A stretch of 64,000 nt of DNA from NCBI GenBank assembly GCA_039096225.1, contig JBBPEB010000024.1, positions 310,001 through 374,000 on the forward strand. Reading direction: 5' to 3'. Positions 32,901 through 44,021 of this stretch are shown here, one piece after another (within the stretch, counting starts at the first letter, position 1; the number at the start of each line of letters is the position of its first letter). The notes under the pieces were generated by a model. The model searched no databases. It saw nothing but the letters and a program-made list of their open reading frames with translations, and was not told the DNA's origin. The translations under genes and the position numbers were made by a program. This DNA comes from Blastocystis sp. Blastoise. Taxonomy: Eukaryota; Protista; Bigyra: Opalinata.

Positions 32901-35722
32901 ATCATACTATCTATATATAGAAAATAAAAAACTATTGTTAATTCTATAAAACAATTAATAGTCATAAATAATATAAATACCAATTCCATCAATATGAATT
33001 AAATATTTATAAGCTAAATCATCTAAAAGAAAAGCTAAAGTTTCATTTTGAGTGGAATCTATTTTATGTATTTGAATTGAGTCAATCATAGATACTATAT
33101 TCATAGGAAATAACGACTTGAAATTATTCATATCTATAGAAAAAATAATACTATGTACATAAATTATTTATTTACTAATTGTTACCCAATAATTTATAAA
33201 ATGTAATTTTGGAAAGCATTCTTTCTTTATTGATGATAATGAAAATAATTCTATATTTATTATATACTTATATATATATATACCATTATCATATATTAGT
33301 TTATTAACATTTGGAAATACATGAGTTGTTATTATTTTCATATATAGATTCGTGTTATCTTTATTAGTCAATTTTTCAACTAGATTGAACAATACTATTG
33401 AGACAAATAATAAATAAAATACTTCTATAGCCATTTAATGTAGTTAAAGAATCCAGAATACCCTCTTTCAATGCTTTTATAATAATTATAGATTCATATC
33501 TTGTGTAATCATCTATAATAAATTAGTTCATCTATATATATATATAATTATTTACATAAGTTTTTCTCATTTTGGGATATAGAATAATAGGAGAGAAGAT
33601 GTAATAACTGAGATATACCACATGTAGAAAATACTTGATAAATTCTATATGATATTTATTAAATAGATTAGTAATATAAAAAAGATATTAGTTAAACAAT
33701 ATAATTATATACATGAATGTTTTATCATTTGTTTTTTCTATATATATATATAATATAATGATAACATTATAAATGAATTTATTGTATACACATACCGTCA
33801 TATAGAATACCAATTATATTCTTATAACTATTTTCATCATCTGTTTCATTAATGTTCACATTCAAGTAATCATTTGTATATATAGCTTCATTAACTACAT
33901 ATTTATATAACTTTGGTAACTTATTAATTTCTCTCCTTTTATTATAAGTATCAATCAAATCAAAGGGATAATATATAGTATCAATATCAAAAGAAAAATA
34001 ATGATTAAATTCATTCATTTCTAATTCGTTATAATAATCATAATCCTTATAATTCTTTATTTTATATCCACATTTATTAAATAATCGGATATATTCCATT
34101 ATATAGTCATCACTATTTGGGTTTAATAATTGTTCTGTTTTCTCATAATTTGTAATCACTATATATTAATAATAATAATATATATATTTACCAATAATTT
34201 TTAATTCTTCTAATGAAGGGAATATATCTTTAATTTTGGAAGGATATATATATTCTAATGGAATATTTGAGGCATATAAATCTATATTATTATCATTTAT
34301 AGTATATTCTATATATATACATGTAATTTCAACTTTAGTAATATTTATCATTTTAATAAGAAACGAATAATATAGCAACTCTTCTTCTCTTTTAGGTGTA
34401 AATAATCCTTTATATATATTCAATGTATTACTTATAAATATCAATATAAAAATACCATCTATTCTCATCCTTTTCTTATTTGAATCAAATAACTTCATAG
34501 GCATATATAACAAACTTTCTTTACCATAAAATTGATATATATCATAATTATTTTCTTTCAAATATTCTATAAATAACTCTTTAATATGAAAAAATAAATC
34601 ACTTTTCATTTCACTATTAGTTGAAAATGAATATTCAAGAAGTGTTCTATATATATCATAGCTATCTCGTAGATTTAAAGAAGAAATATCTTGGTTTTTG
34701 TCCATAAAAAATGAAATCACTTTTTCTGTATGAAATGGAAGCATATCTATATAATAACTACCATCTTCATATTTCTCAGAGTGTCCAATAATATCATAAA
34801 AGGCAGCGACTTCCAAAAGGCCCTTTTTTTTTGCGGCGTCGCAATTGTCAGCAAAATTTGTGACACAAAAATGAAAAATGATAAATAACTTTTTTGTTTT
34901 TAATTTTAAAAATATAAAAAAAATATTTTCAAACTCAGCTCATCAAGACACGTCGATTTACACACTTTTCATGAAAAAAGGACCGGGTGACATAAAAAAG
35001 ATAATTCATTCATTGACTATTATATTATGACGTGACAGTTTTTGACTAAAAACGTATTATTTTGATATATAATGTATGACTATTTGAAAATAAGTCAAAT
35101 AAAATATTTTTTGTGACACATGTTGTGACAGATACATGACTGAAAAGTATATAAGTCATCAAATAACAACAAGTATGATTCCTATGTTTGACTATTCGTG
35201 TTAAGTTGGGTGACAAATAAAAATATTTTGTGACAATAGTCAATTGTTTATATACTTTTTTTAAGCTATTTCAAATAGTATTATTTATGTGTTATAATGA
35301 ATAATATTGTCAATAAACTCTAAAATAATATTATAAAAAATAATAATGTAATTAAAAAGTTTTTGTTTTTGTTAAATATCACGAAGTAGTCTTGTAGGGA
35401 CTCTACAGATACACCCTGACTAGTAATAAAAAAAAATAAACGAAAAGCATATTAAAATAATTATTTTCAAAAACCAAACAAAAAACAACAGTATGAACAA
35501 AAGTCAGATTTTAAAAAACAATACTTCAGACAAAATGTTTTTTAATAGCCTTTAAAAATGGTTTTAAAATGTATTTTACATGTAGAATAAGTCACACAAC
35601 ACATTTATAATATTTATATTGTAAAATATATTATTTTTATGTTTAAAAAGGGAAAAATAAAAAAAGGTTAGTAGTCACTGGTTTTATAATTATTATATGA
35701 CTTGATGATAAATATTATATAA

Positions 35723-35798
35723 GGGGTATTTGGTCGAATGGTTTATGCGCATAAAATTTTTACATGGTCGACGGATCGATCCTTATAGGGGACATTTT
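35723..35798 (+). other. tRNA-like Pol III cassette 1 (A box, B box, T-run), no acceptor stem
   Basis: TGGTCGAATGG (A-box-like) and GGATCGATCC (B-box-like) at tRNA spacing, then CTTATAGGGGACATTTT. Confidence 0.5.
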
Positions 35799-36075
35799 CT
35801 TTTAAATTTTTTTGACAACTATTTATAATGATTCAATCAACTCTGCGTCATTTTTAGTATTTAAAAAACGTTTACATCACTGAGGTGTTCTTTTTGAGTT
35901 CATTATCACCACATCAATAGACAATTTATTTTCAAAAATTAATAATTTCTATTTAATAGTTATTCTAAGCATGTCTATACTGACATAAATGTTATGAAAG
36001 ATAATGAATATAAAAATTTGAAGATTTAGCTATATTTAAATTTATTATATATATTATATAAAAACAAAAAATTGA

Positions 36076-36155
36076 GAGAATTGTTGGTATAGTTGGTCAG
36101 CGCTATAGTTATAATGGTTATTGTCGCTGGTTCAAATCTTATCTGGGGCATTTTT
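36076..36155 (+). other. tRNA-like Pol III cassette 2, related to cassette 1
   Basis: TGGTATAGTTGG (A box), GGTTCAAATC (B box), then CTTATCTGGGGCATTTTT; same layout and 3' tail as cassette 1. Confidence 0.55.
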
Positions 36156-41569: not shown

Positions 41570-41626
<57 letters not shown>

Positions 41627-42174
41627 ACAAAATTTGTTATTTTCGTTTTTAACTAGCAAACAAAAGCACAGAATTCAAGAATGGCAATAAGAAATAAATT
41701 TTCTATATAATATATAAATTGATGATAAATATAAAACATAAATAAAATAAATAAAAATTAAATAAATAATTTTAATAGGAAAAAAAGAAAAAGAGAAAAT
41801 GTGTCAATGTAATAAAGAAACAAATAGATATATTTATATACCTTCAATATTGCTTTGATTTGTTATTTGGAAGAGGTATAGACAATAATAACCAAGAAAC
41901 CTAAATGAATTAAAAAAGGAATTAGATAAAATACCTTATAAGAATCAAATCAACGATTCCATGTTATAAATGTATTTGAAATAGACCAAGGAGACTGTTT
42001 GAAAGGAAGAGGAAATCCAAAATGGGGAATCTAAAAGAATAATGTAAAATAATATGATATATTAGATAAATAAATACTTACACAGCATTAGGATTGCTTA
42101 AAAGCATCTATAGTCCTCGTAATAAGTTCTATTTCTACATAGAGACAACAAATTAAATATAAAAATGTATTCAT
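36817..42174 (-). CDS. Filamin/Ig-like repeat protein with a possible signal peptide, over 20 exons, carried inside the hAT-like element; probably starting to decay
   Basis: Spliced exons give repeated filamin motifs: TAGSIYPLQL, YDIYITVDGIPIHYSPF..VTHG..PSNT, FEIYFRDEYNN, VNGLSVINTPFQLSV, FTLIVRDRYYN, AGTLTYMYIYTRDIYDDG, TTGIEFNCTFHPRDIYGN. Tentative start MNTFLYLICCLY|MLLSNPNAV. Both ends are uncertain; two in-frame stops in the 5' exons. Confidence 0.72.
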
Positions 42175-44021
42175 ATTTAAATTCAAATCTTTCAGTCAAA
42201 TACTAAAAATATTCTTAAAAATACATTTTTTATTCTTCAGTTTTTTTTTGAGATATTCTATTAAGATTATTAGTTTTAACGCGTCAGACAATACATTATT
42301 TACACAATTCTATTGTATCCCACTACTTTTAGCTTCTCAAAAATAACTCATTTTCTTTGACTTTCTGATCTGTTTATATACTCGTCTAAAAACTACTGTT
42401 TTCAACTTCAAATGCTTTTCTATTACATAAAATTACTCTAATAGCAACTTTTAAAACGACTTTTATTTGATACTAAAAAATAACTGCTTAGTTTAAACTT
42501 CTGACAAAAGTTTTTGATGCGGAACCTTTAATTATACTAAAATATAATGTAAAAACTATTCTAAAATCTTTTTGTGCTTTGATATATAACAAAATATAAA
42601 CAGACTCAGTTTTGGACAAGAAAATTATTCCCGTAAATACAAAAGAATCAAAACTCTGGTCTTTTATTCAGCCAAACAAATAGGCTCGGTTCATTCTTTC
42701 AGTGTAAAAAAATAATTTTTTGACTTTTTGACTTGGTTGTCGTTTTGACTCATAGATGTCATTTTATTCACTTTTACACATGTTTATGAATTTAAGAGGT
42801 CTTTCACTTTGAACAGAGCTATAAAAAATTCTAAAATATTGACCCCATTATTGTCAAAATGGCGACTTAGAATGAAACAGAAACGTTTTTGATATTGTAT
42901 AACACTTTAGAATAATATAAAGATGTCAATTCATTGATAAAATATGCTTAATAGTTTTTTTGAGTCTAAATCATTAATCTACATAAAACTTTCCTGAAAT
43001 ATTCTTCTTTTGTATTCAAGTCTTTTATTTATTGAATTATTATTGATTAAAAATGTTCTTATGCAAAAATAAGCCATGAAAAAGCTTTAAATAGTCAAAA
43101 GTACCTATCAGTGAGAGAAATCACAATCTGGCTTCAGTTTATCGAATTCAGCCGAATTAAGCATGGCTGAAAAAAGTGTCACAAAAGTGTCGCCGCAAGT
43201 GTCACAGACACTCGGGAAGGCACTGATAAAAGGTAAATTGAGGATATTTCTCAATAAATTCTCTAGAAATCCATAATTTCGTCTCATCTTGAAACGTAAA
43301 TAAATCTAAAAACAATAAATCGTTTTTGTTGATATTTAAATACATTTCTCTTCGGTTAATAAAGACTCAGTGGTTGACATTACAAGAATTAAACTATAAT
43401 GATAACATAATCATACATTATTATACATAAGAAATATATTTTTATATAATTTGAGTAATAAATACTTTTAAAATGACTATATTATAATAAGAAAGTAATG
43501 AATTAATGTAAACAAGAGAAAATAAAACTCTGAAAAGAAAATTTTATTTTTTTCTAGGAAATAAATAAAAAATGACTTTAATGATTCAAATATTCGGAAC
43601 ATTTTATTTTTCTCATAAAAATATATATATTCACTTTTCAAGGTGATTCTCAAGTGTATTTTCGAATAATAATATATCATGTGTTCACATGAAAGTTTCA
43701 AATATATTTTTGATCAAGAATACCAAAAACATCACTAATTTCTTCCATCAAATTATTAAAAAGGAATAGATAATTCTTGTGATTATTGAGAATATACATA
43801 GAATTATTTATAGTATCAAATCACTAGCTTTCTTTCATGAAATTAACTTTTTAAACACACTTTTTCTTAAATTTATTATATAATTATTTTATTTTATATA
43901 TCAGACACATATAGATATATATATTTTGACTGTATACAATAGATTCAAACTTTTTATATAAACTATTTTTATATAGAAAAATATATAGTGTTTAATACAC
44001 TATGGACATTTTTTCAGGTTT

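Follow-up and report, generated by a model that had tools for sequence, protein, structure and literature searches.

We analysed a 64-kb window of the Blastocystis sp. Blastoise genome (C23:310001-374000; the window is the whole stretch under study), in which a hAT transposon carries a large fragment of a host gene. Window positions 34804-43225 were identified as an 8,422-bp non-autonomous hAT element, the C23 copy. We consider it very probable that this is a Pack-type hAT, which took up host-gene DNA as cargo, was mobilised in trans and afterwards lost introns exactly in its copies. It contains no internal transposase, it holds host-gene sequence with parental-type loci elsewhere, and it transposed after the capture. 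The element is a clean and young case of gene-fragment capture and amplification at the DNA level outside plants and animals, and the capture is about 20 times the usual size. Six near-identical copies were found, with a resolvable order of origin and with exact intron deletions, one of which removed an intron of the minor spliceosome. How fast and by what mechanism introns are lost is a long-standing question, and this system could allow both to be measured directly.

Structure and mobility of the element

The sequence ATAAAAGG directly abutted the element on both sides as an exact 8-bp target site duplication (TSD). The tips were CAGCGACTTCC on the left and CAGTGCCTTCC, read inward, on the right, and 9 of the 11 terminal bases were identical. 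Both tips satisfied the YARNG rule of hAT ends (CAGCG and CAGTG), and the element reads CAG...CTG. The sequence TTGCGGCG was present at positions 28-35 counted from either tip. The motif GTGACA occurred seven times on the plus strand near the left end and twice on the minus strand near the right end. The whole 64-kb window contained 19 of these motifs versus 7.8 expected, a count that none of 100 shuffles reached. An earlier note on this DNA had described the exact duplication, CAG-initiated imperfect terminal inverted repeats (TIRs) and oppositely oriented subterminal GTGACA motifs, and these were confirmed. The parts of the element and the basis for each were as follows.

34796-34803, no strand: left TSD copy, ATAAAAGG (8-bp duplication)
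34804-43225, plus: whole non-autonomous hAT element, 8,422 bp (six genome copies, own TSD each)
34804-34814, plus: left TIR, CAGCGACTTCC, YARNG-type (terminal sequence)
34804-36163, plus: left 1.36-kb hAT block (DNA identity of 83-86% to the C28 and C15 hATs)
34860-35235, plus: left subterminal GTGACA array, seven motifs (motif count)
36164-37022, no strand: spacer restricted to this six-copy family (DNA search of the genome)
37023-41537, minus: captured piece of a host gene with about 24 exons (93-97% identity to nine loci that have no hAT ends)
41538-41640, no strand: (TATC)n/(TA)n microsatellite at the 5' capture boundary (sequence)
41680-43114, plus: end of a putative CACTA-like transposon, 1.43 kb (72-76% identity to more than 100 copies)
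43177-43205, minus: right subterminal GTGACA, two motifs (motif count)
43215-43225, minus: right TIR, CAGTGCCTTCC read inward (terminal sequence)
43226-43233, no strand: right TSD copy, ATAAAAGG (8-bp duplication)

The genome searched was a 33.34-Mb assembly of 34 contigs with about 20% G+C. Both ends of the element recurred elsewhere in it, and six full copies were found, each with its own perfect 8-bp duplication and all six duplications different. The earlier note had proposed a search with the termini for copies with other TSDs, and five more were obtained; its alternative that the termini might be single-copy did not hold. It had also stated that the unit moved as one piece, and the six distinct TSDs established this. 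The copies are given below with their TSDs and with the cargo introns that they lack.

C26 copy: TSD TTTGCGTA; 37594-37634 and four consecutive introns within 40561-41057 absent
C20 copy: TSD TATATAAT; every intron present
C17 copy: TSD AATATATA; 37738 intron and 37594-37634 absent
C23 copy (window): TSD ATAAAAGG; 45-nt intron at 37738 absent
C13:1008312 copy: TSD TTTTTCAA; 37738 intron, 37879-37920 and also 38051-38090 absent
C13:1163042 copy: TSD ATTATAGT; 37738 intron, 37879-37920 and also 38566-38616 and the adjacent 38429-38493 absent

Chance was excluded as the origin of these features because the five additional copies each had their own perfect 8-bp TSD. Misassembly was ruled out by the six independent TSDs together with a colinear empty site. 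When the six sites were compared with the hAT target consensus nTnnnnAn, only TTTTTCAA matched both positions, in a genome of 20% GC. Five of the copies were colinear over 8.3-8.5 kb with 0-2 aligned substitutions, all at one homopolymer-length site. The C26 copy was 99.5% identical to the others in its ends and 98.7% in the cargo exons, and it is older than the other five. These results indicated that the transposon was very recently active, and it is probably still active.

The empty site was reconstructed by deleting the element and one TSD copy in silico and aligning the joined flanks to the uninterrupted paralogue of the host gene. The flanks were colinear with window 24923-26869, with 72.8% identity over 1,992 columns. 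The minus-strand frame from the ATG at 43345-43343 stayed open through the rejoined junction. The insertion disrupts the first exon of an orphan host gene. This was in agreement with the earlier claim of a cut host exon whose halves rejoin in frame and match the paralogue. A Pfam search of the interrupted gene and of its paralogue returned no family. Three features were assigned from the flank alignment.

43234-43345, minus: host exon, 5' part (ATG 43345-43343)
34166-34795, minus: host exon, 3' continuation, orphan gene
24923-26869, minus: uninterrupted host-gene paralogue, the empty-site reference

Several parts of the element had relatives of their own. The final 110 bp were the hAT right end, and the left block 34804-36163 also matched a 16-kb hAT family of the same genome from position 117 on. 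The segment 41680-43114 had more than 100 relatives, which all terminated in ...CCTAYCAGTG and then ran into unique flanks. Because this CACTG terminus was found in all relatives, the source family was called CACTA-like by its sequence. At C21:1134003 and C16:29518, the same CACTA-like end fragment (76%) and a hAT right-end-like sequence (80%) were separated by about 525 bp, and this hAT lineage may therefore already have contained the fragment when it captured the gene. In the C26 copy, the divergence of the middle (36164-41537; exons 98.7% identical, spacer 96.5%) was about three times that of the ends (99.5-99.6%); end homogenisation between copies or conversion patches are possible reasons. 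This copy also held two nested insertions of 5,733 and 2,858 bp, which belonged to one family and lay in opposite orientations. One end of these insertions was ...AGCGTAGGCTGGCGTAGCCAGTCGTGAAACGC with a hairpin-like palindrome, and there was no open frame of at least 120 aa; they look like non-autonomous Helitrons. One of them sat about 25 bp upstream of a tRNA-like stretch at window 36084-36165, on the inner edge of the shared left block, which had a box-A-like TAGTTGGTCAGCGC, a box-B-like GGTTCAAATC and then a T-run. The stretch was called by neither ARAGORN nor Rfam, and its fold was no better than those of shuffles (z 0.29). The tRNA and Rfam scans of the element gave no match.

The captured gene fragment

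The cargo was searched as DNA (query window 36100-42750) against the genome, and nine paralogue loci were characterised by match coordinates. These additional loci, on C8, C13, C14 (two), C16, C26 (two), C30 and C31, were 93-97% identical to the cargo. The matches ended at the same positions, 37023 and 41537, with three starting later instead. In the end searches of the genome no hAT ends were found at the nine loci. The spacer 36164-37022 was likewise found at none of them, and was seen only in the six element copies. The results bore out two points of the earlier note, namely that the element carries host-gene DNA with its introns and that parental-type loci lacking TIRs exist.

The opposite direction was considered, in which the nine loci without ends are derivatives. 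The 4.5-kb block would then have spread from the element, or would be a unit of its own, mobile or segmentally duplicated, which came to lie in the hAT as well. All nine share both boundaries of the cargo exactly and several are partial, and many of them are close to contig ends (about 20-105 kb away), in regions that are often segmentally duplicated. However, identical boundaries are equally predicted by capture from one member of an existing family. Moreover, the paralogues are 3-7% diverged and retain introns that were lost in element copies, so they are older than the element burst, and none of them has the element-specific spacer or the hAT ends. We regard a derivative origin of the nine loci as quite unlikely, and capture of the block by the element is preferred.

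The cargo ran on the minus strand with about 24 exons and introns of 37-65 nt. At its 5' boundary, 41537, the frame was already open without an ATG and was preceded by a ...CTATTAG acceptor. On the 3' side, a hydrophobic C-terminal tail was encoded by the exon that follows intron 37069-37106, and the in-frame stop now lies about 28 nt past the boundary of the paralogue homology. Because there was no start codon and the cargo began right after an intron acceptor, it was read as a large gene fragment, truncated on the 5' side and extending nearly as far as the natural 3' end, and not as a whole gene. The earlier note had described a whole, near-complete gene of 5.4 kb with more than 20 exons. 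The roughly two dozen exons with their introns were found, and the captured block was reduced to 4.5 kb (37023-41537); completeness was contradicted by the missing ATG, the start after the acceptor at 41537 and the homology that ends 28 nt before the stop.

The product of the cargo was examined with the exons searched singly, or as unaltered open frames from naturally intron-poor copies. The earlier note had assigned it to filamin repeats, and this was not upheld. In the genome scan the Filamin profile (PF00630) matched on C18 only and not in the element. Pfam returned nothing for ten exon frames and for four natural multi-exon frames (158-269 aa, unaltered, from the intron-poor copies). A HMMER search of the largest exon against 1.84 billion representatives gave one real and uninformative relative of 113 aa with 30% identity. 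A second match of the same exon was rejected as false, due to low complexity. A word-indexed homologue search with the natural 269-aa frame found nothing. Single-sequence AlphaFold models of the cargo were all-beta with low confidence (pLDDT 52 and 33), and Foldseek gave no meaningful match with the first model, whose pLDDT was poor. The one result that pointed to filamins was the Atlas language-model feature search, which placed the cargo at 0.90 to filamin-type clusters with 181-185 shared features. We called the predicted product an orphan protein of all-beta repeats whose C-terminal tail resembles a membrane anchor, and its filamin membership is unproven. The idea that the element serves as a route for spreading surface-protein genes is speculation.

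Intron loss among the copies

The young copies differed almost solely by whole introns of 40-65 nt, which were removed exactly. The polymorphic introns and their states in the element copies and in the nine paralogues were as follows.

37594-37634, minus: 41-nt GT-AG intron, precisely missing from both the C17 and the C26 copy
37737-37738, minus: site of a 45-nt intron that the window copy has lost; the C20 and C26 copies still have it, as do all five paralogues with full coverage
37879-37920, minus: 42-nt GT-AG intron, exactly absent in both C13 copies
38051-38090, minus: 40-nt GT-AG intron, exactly absent in C13:1008312
38429-38493, minus: 65-nt intron of apparent AT-AC minor type, exactly absent in C13:1163042, present in the five other copies and nine paralogues
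38566-38616, minus: 51-nt GT-AG intron, precisely missing from C13:1163042; of the paralogues, one (C26:38145-38419) lacks it as well
40561-41057, minus: four GT-AG introns (40561-40602, 40727-40773, 40844-40892 and 41007-41057), exactly absent in the C26 copy, kept in nine of nine paralogues

Nine of the ten polymorphic introns were bounded by GT...AG. The exception, 38429-38493, started with ATATCCTTTT (5' ATATCCTT), ended with AC and had a branch-like TTTCTTTAATC 9 nt before the terminal AC. The AT-AC ends, the ATATCCTT and the TCCTTAAC-like branch site are those of U12-type introns, and by these signals it was classed as an AT-AC minor-type intron. Its removal kept the frame. Introns of the minor AT-AC class are common in Blastocystis and are lost rapidly there (PMC10639083). 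All five junctions tested in the young copies kept the frame, and the junction of the 51-nt intron was read through in the frame that spans the AT-AC junction. The C26 stretch without its four introns formed a single open frame of 309 aa.

In the five fully covered paralogues, the lengths accounted for all three introns at 38051, 37879 and 37738. The AT-AC intron was kept by all nine paralogues, and the 51-nt intron was missing in one. For the same ten introns, the 3-7% diverged paralogues thus gave one clear exception and one possible one. Since the polymorphic introns are present in diverged paralogues, the differences among the copies are best read as losses. The alternative is that they are gains, in which short intron-like elements were inserted after transposition. 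The introns are indeed short, AT-rich and similar to each other. However, every tested polymorphic intron was present in the diverged paralogues, and one of them is of the AT-AC minor type with its own splice signals. The 37738 intron had diverged between the C20 and C26 copies, and four neighbouring introns were jointly missing in the C26 copy. Gain is hardly credible under these observations, and we continue with losses.

The intron states nested in one ladder (C26, C20, C17, C23 and the C13 pair), which was concordant with the homopolymer variant. Along the genealogy from C20 through C17, C23 and the C13 pair to its two members, about one exact intron deletion was added per step with almost no substitutions. 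At least seven loss events occurred among copies with almost no substitutions, and the paralogues showed one or two at most. Assembly or polishing could have produced such differences if transcript-derived reads were used or if repeats were polished across copies. Near-identical repeat copies are difficult to assemble, the states were taken from the assembly, and the assembly project generated RNA data too (PMC12129017). However, the lossy copies were each missing just 1-5 introns out of about two dozen. The pattern was nested, fitted one ladder-like genealogy and agreed with the homopolymer variant, and one paralogue likewise lacked an intron. An artefact of this kind is judged unlikely, and true loss is the reading that we keep.

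Gene conversion from the paralogues was also considered as a source of the intron-less states and was rejected. The four introns missing in C26 were absent in no paralogue, and the exons flanking the lost introns had no paralogue-type substitutions in the young copies. Because of the lack of paralogue-type changes in the flanking exons, a spliced transcript of the element's own cargo is most likely to have been the template of intron loss. If so, the cargo would have to be transcribed, with correct splicing by both spliceosomes. Two RNA-type sequencing runs contained 18-28% of the element's words, counted over the element as a whole.

A further step would be to tie the losses mechanistically to the transposon life cycle, through excision-gap repair or inter-copy recombination that uses spliced cargo transcripts. 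We offer this as a tentative idea of rather low probability. If true, a gene-carrying DNA transposon would naturally erase introns of the major as well as the minor type, and intron loss could be watched live in such a system.

Elsewhere in the window, positions 47000-51000 showed a very strong purine skew of the plus strand over 4 kb, with a GC skew of about +0.8 and an AT skew of about +0.5.

Candidate helpers and comparison with known systems

The earlier note had claimed a hAT-like element with no transposase, which is mobilised in trans by an autonomous partner with matching ends. A genome scan for the hAT dimerisation domain (Dimer_Tnp_hAT) gave at least 37 matches, and none of them was inside the element. 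In tblastx against three transposase-bearing relatives, the shared sequence was confined to the first 1.36 kb and the last 80 bp. The longest open frame within the element was at most 144 aa. The absence of a transposase was established by these results.

Candidate helpers were found at C28:220278-243914 (23.6 kb) and C15:688927-707904 (18,978 bp). Their ends resembled those of the element, the first 117 bp being 97% identical and the last 79 bp 85%, and their encoded proteins were 99.7% identical to each other. The C28 transposase reading frame consisted of three frames of 791, 260 and 189 aa with intron-sized gaps between them. The last frame matched Dimer_Tnp_hAT (PF05699) with an E-value of 3.5e-4 and 20.7 bits, against a curated cut-off of 21.4, and with 21.7 bits in the genome scan. 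In the first frame, a CxxH-type block, GCRVHMLNL, was seen by eye, and the Atlas feature search placed this frame at 0.93 to DUF4371/FAM200-ZBED5 RNase-like/Dimer_Tnp_hAT clusters. A PDB sequence search with the helper 721-aa frame gave no match. The evidence points to a Buster/ZMYM1-like hAT transposase in the helpers. The C15 element also contained a UTP20_N fragment. By BLASTP, the transposase of the 16-kb family was unrelated to that of C15 and C28. From the end similarity, the C28 and C15 elements are likely suppliers of transposase in trans, and the autonomous partner expected by the earlier note was thereby provided with two candidates.

Paired matches to the left and right ends (78-88%) in the same orientation were also observed at C8:1430207-1457902, C29:196056-217767, C19:946056-962347, C24:893588-924756 and C10:88435-137017. 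They suggest further relatives of 16 to 49 kb, whose size was probably increased by nested elements. At least 25 places, for example C23:140447-140509 and C23:167994-168056, matched only the first 63 bp of the left terminus, at 87% identity. These may belong to a separate, short MITE-like family that shares the tip.

Taken together, the data are consistent with the following course. The element keeps just the parts that a transposase requires, that is, the short CAG...CTG inverted ends and the GTGACA arrays. The interior is filler, made of the family-specific spacer, the 4.5-kb 5'-truncated host-gene fragment and the final 1.43 kb of a CACTA-like transposon. Template switching, the route suggested for other Pack elements, may have brought in the cargo during gap repair or replication. 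A Buster/ZMYM1-like hAT transposase would act in trans, with the C28 and C15 elements as the best candidates, and insertion generates the 8-bp duplications. After amplification, spliced cargo transcripts, directly or as cDNA, may have templated recombination or repair with exact intron loss. Several points weigh against this course. The helpers were assigned by end similarity, and the right end is only 85% alike. The Pfam score of the helper, 20.7 bits, falls just below the curated cut-off of 21.4. Cargo transcription was deduced from the intron losses, the parental-type loci were compared through match coordinates, and the insertions and intron states were read from assembled contigs.

Pack-hAT and Pack-TIR elements are already known, as a term and as a concept, in plants and animals (Gisby and Catoni 2022, PMC8903248; Tan et al. 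2021, PMC8277862). In animals, 208 hAT-associated captures were reported with a median of 224 bp, and 1.4% of them were multicopy (PMC8277862). In the genome paper on tortoise Blastocystis isolates, transposable elements made up 5.6-7.5% and hAT was unmentioned (PMC12129017). Like Pack-TIR elements, the present family is non-autonomous, has host gene DNA inside and a parental copy elsewhere, and occurs in multiple copies with distinct TSDs. Unlike the animal Pack-hATs with their median of 224 bp, it captured 4.5 kb with about 24 exons. It also differs from plant and animal Pack-hATs in its host, a stramenopile gut protist, in the end of a second transposon packed inside and in the copies that lose introns.

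The maize Ac/Ds system consists of an autonomous hAT and internally replaced derivatives that are mobilised in trans. It has an 8-bp TSD, short imperfect CAG/TAG inverted ends and subterminal motifs that are bound by the transposase. The present element resembles Ac/Ds in the 8-bp TSD, the short imperfect inverted ends, the subterminal motifs and the state of a putatively trans-mobilised derivative with an inferred helper. In contrast to Ac/Ds, the transposase lineage looks Buster/ZMYM1-like, and the helpers are 19-24 kb long with host fragments such as UTP20_N. Within the same genome, the 16-kb and 19-kb cargo-carrying hATs have in common with the element a left subterminal region of 1.2-1.36 kb at 83-86% and a related right tip. 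They encode transposase and UTP20 pieces, whereas the present family lacks a transposase, and the gene fragment that it carries is another and far larger one.

Precise intron loss templated by reverse transcripts or RNA is known from cDNA recombination in yeast, and intron presence/absence polymorphism is known in Daphnia and fungi. The losses described here resemble RNA-templated loss in that they are exact and frame-keeping and sometimes affect adjacent introns together. Unlike the known cases, they occurred between transposon-borne copies that are nearly free of substitutions, and they were far commoner than in the chromosomal paralogues. The Pack-hAT kind itself was already known, and the present family is distinctive in its capture size, its host lineage and its ongoing exact intron loss.

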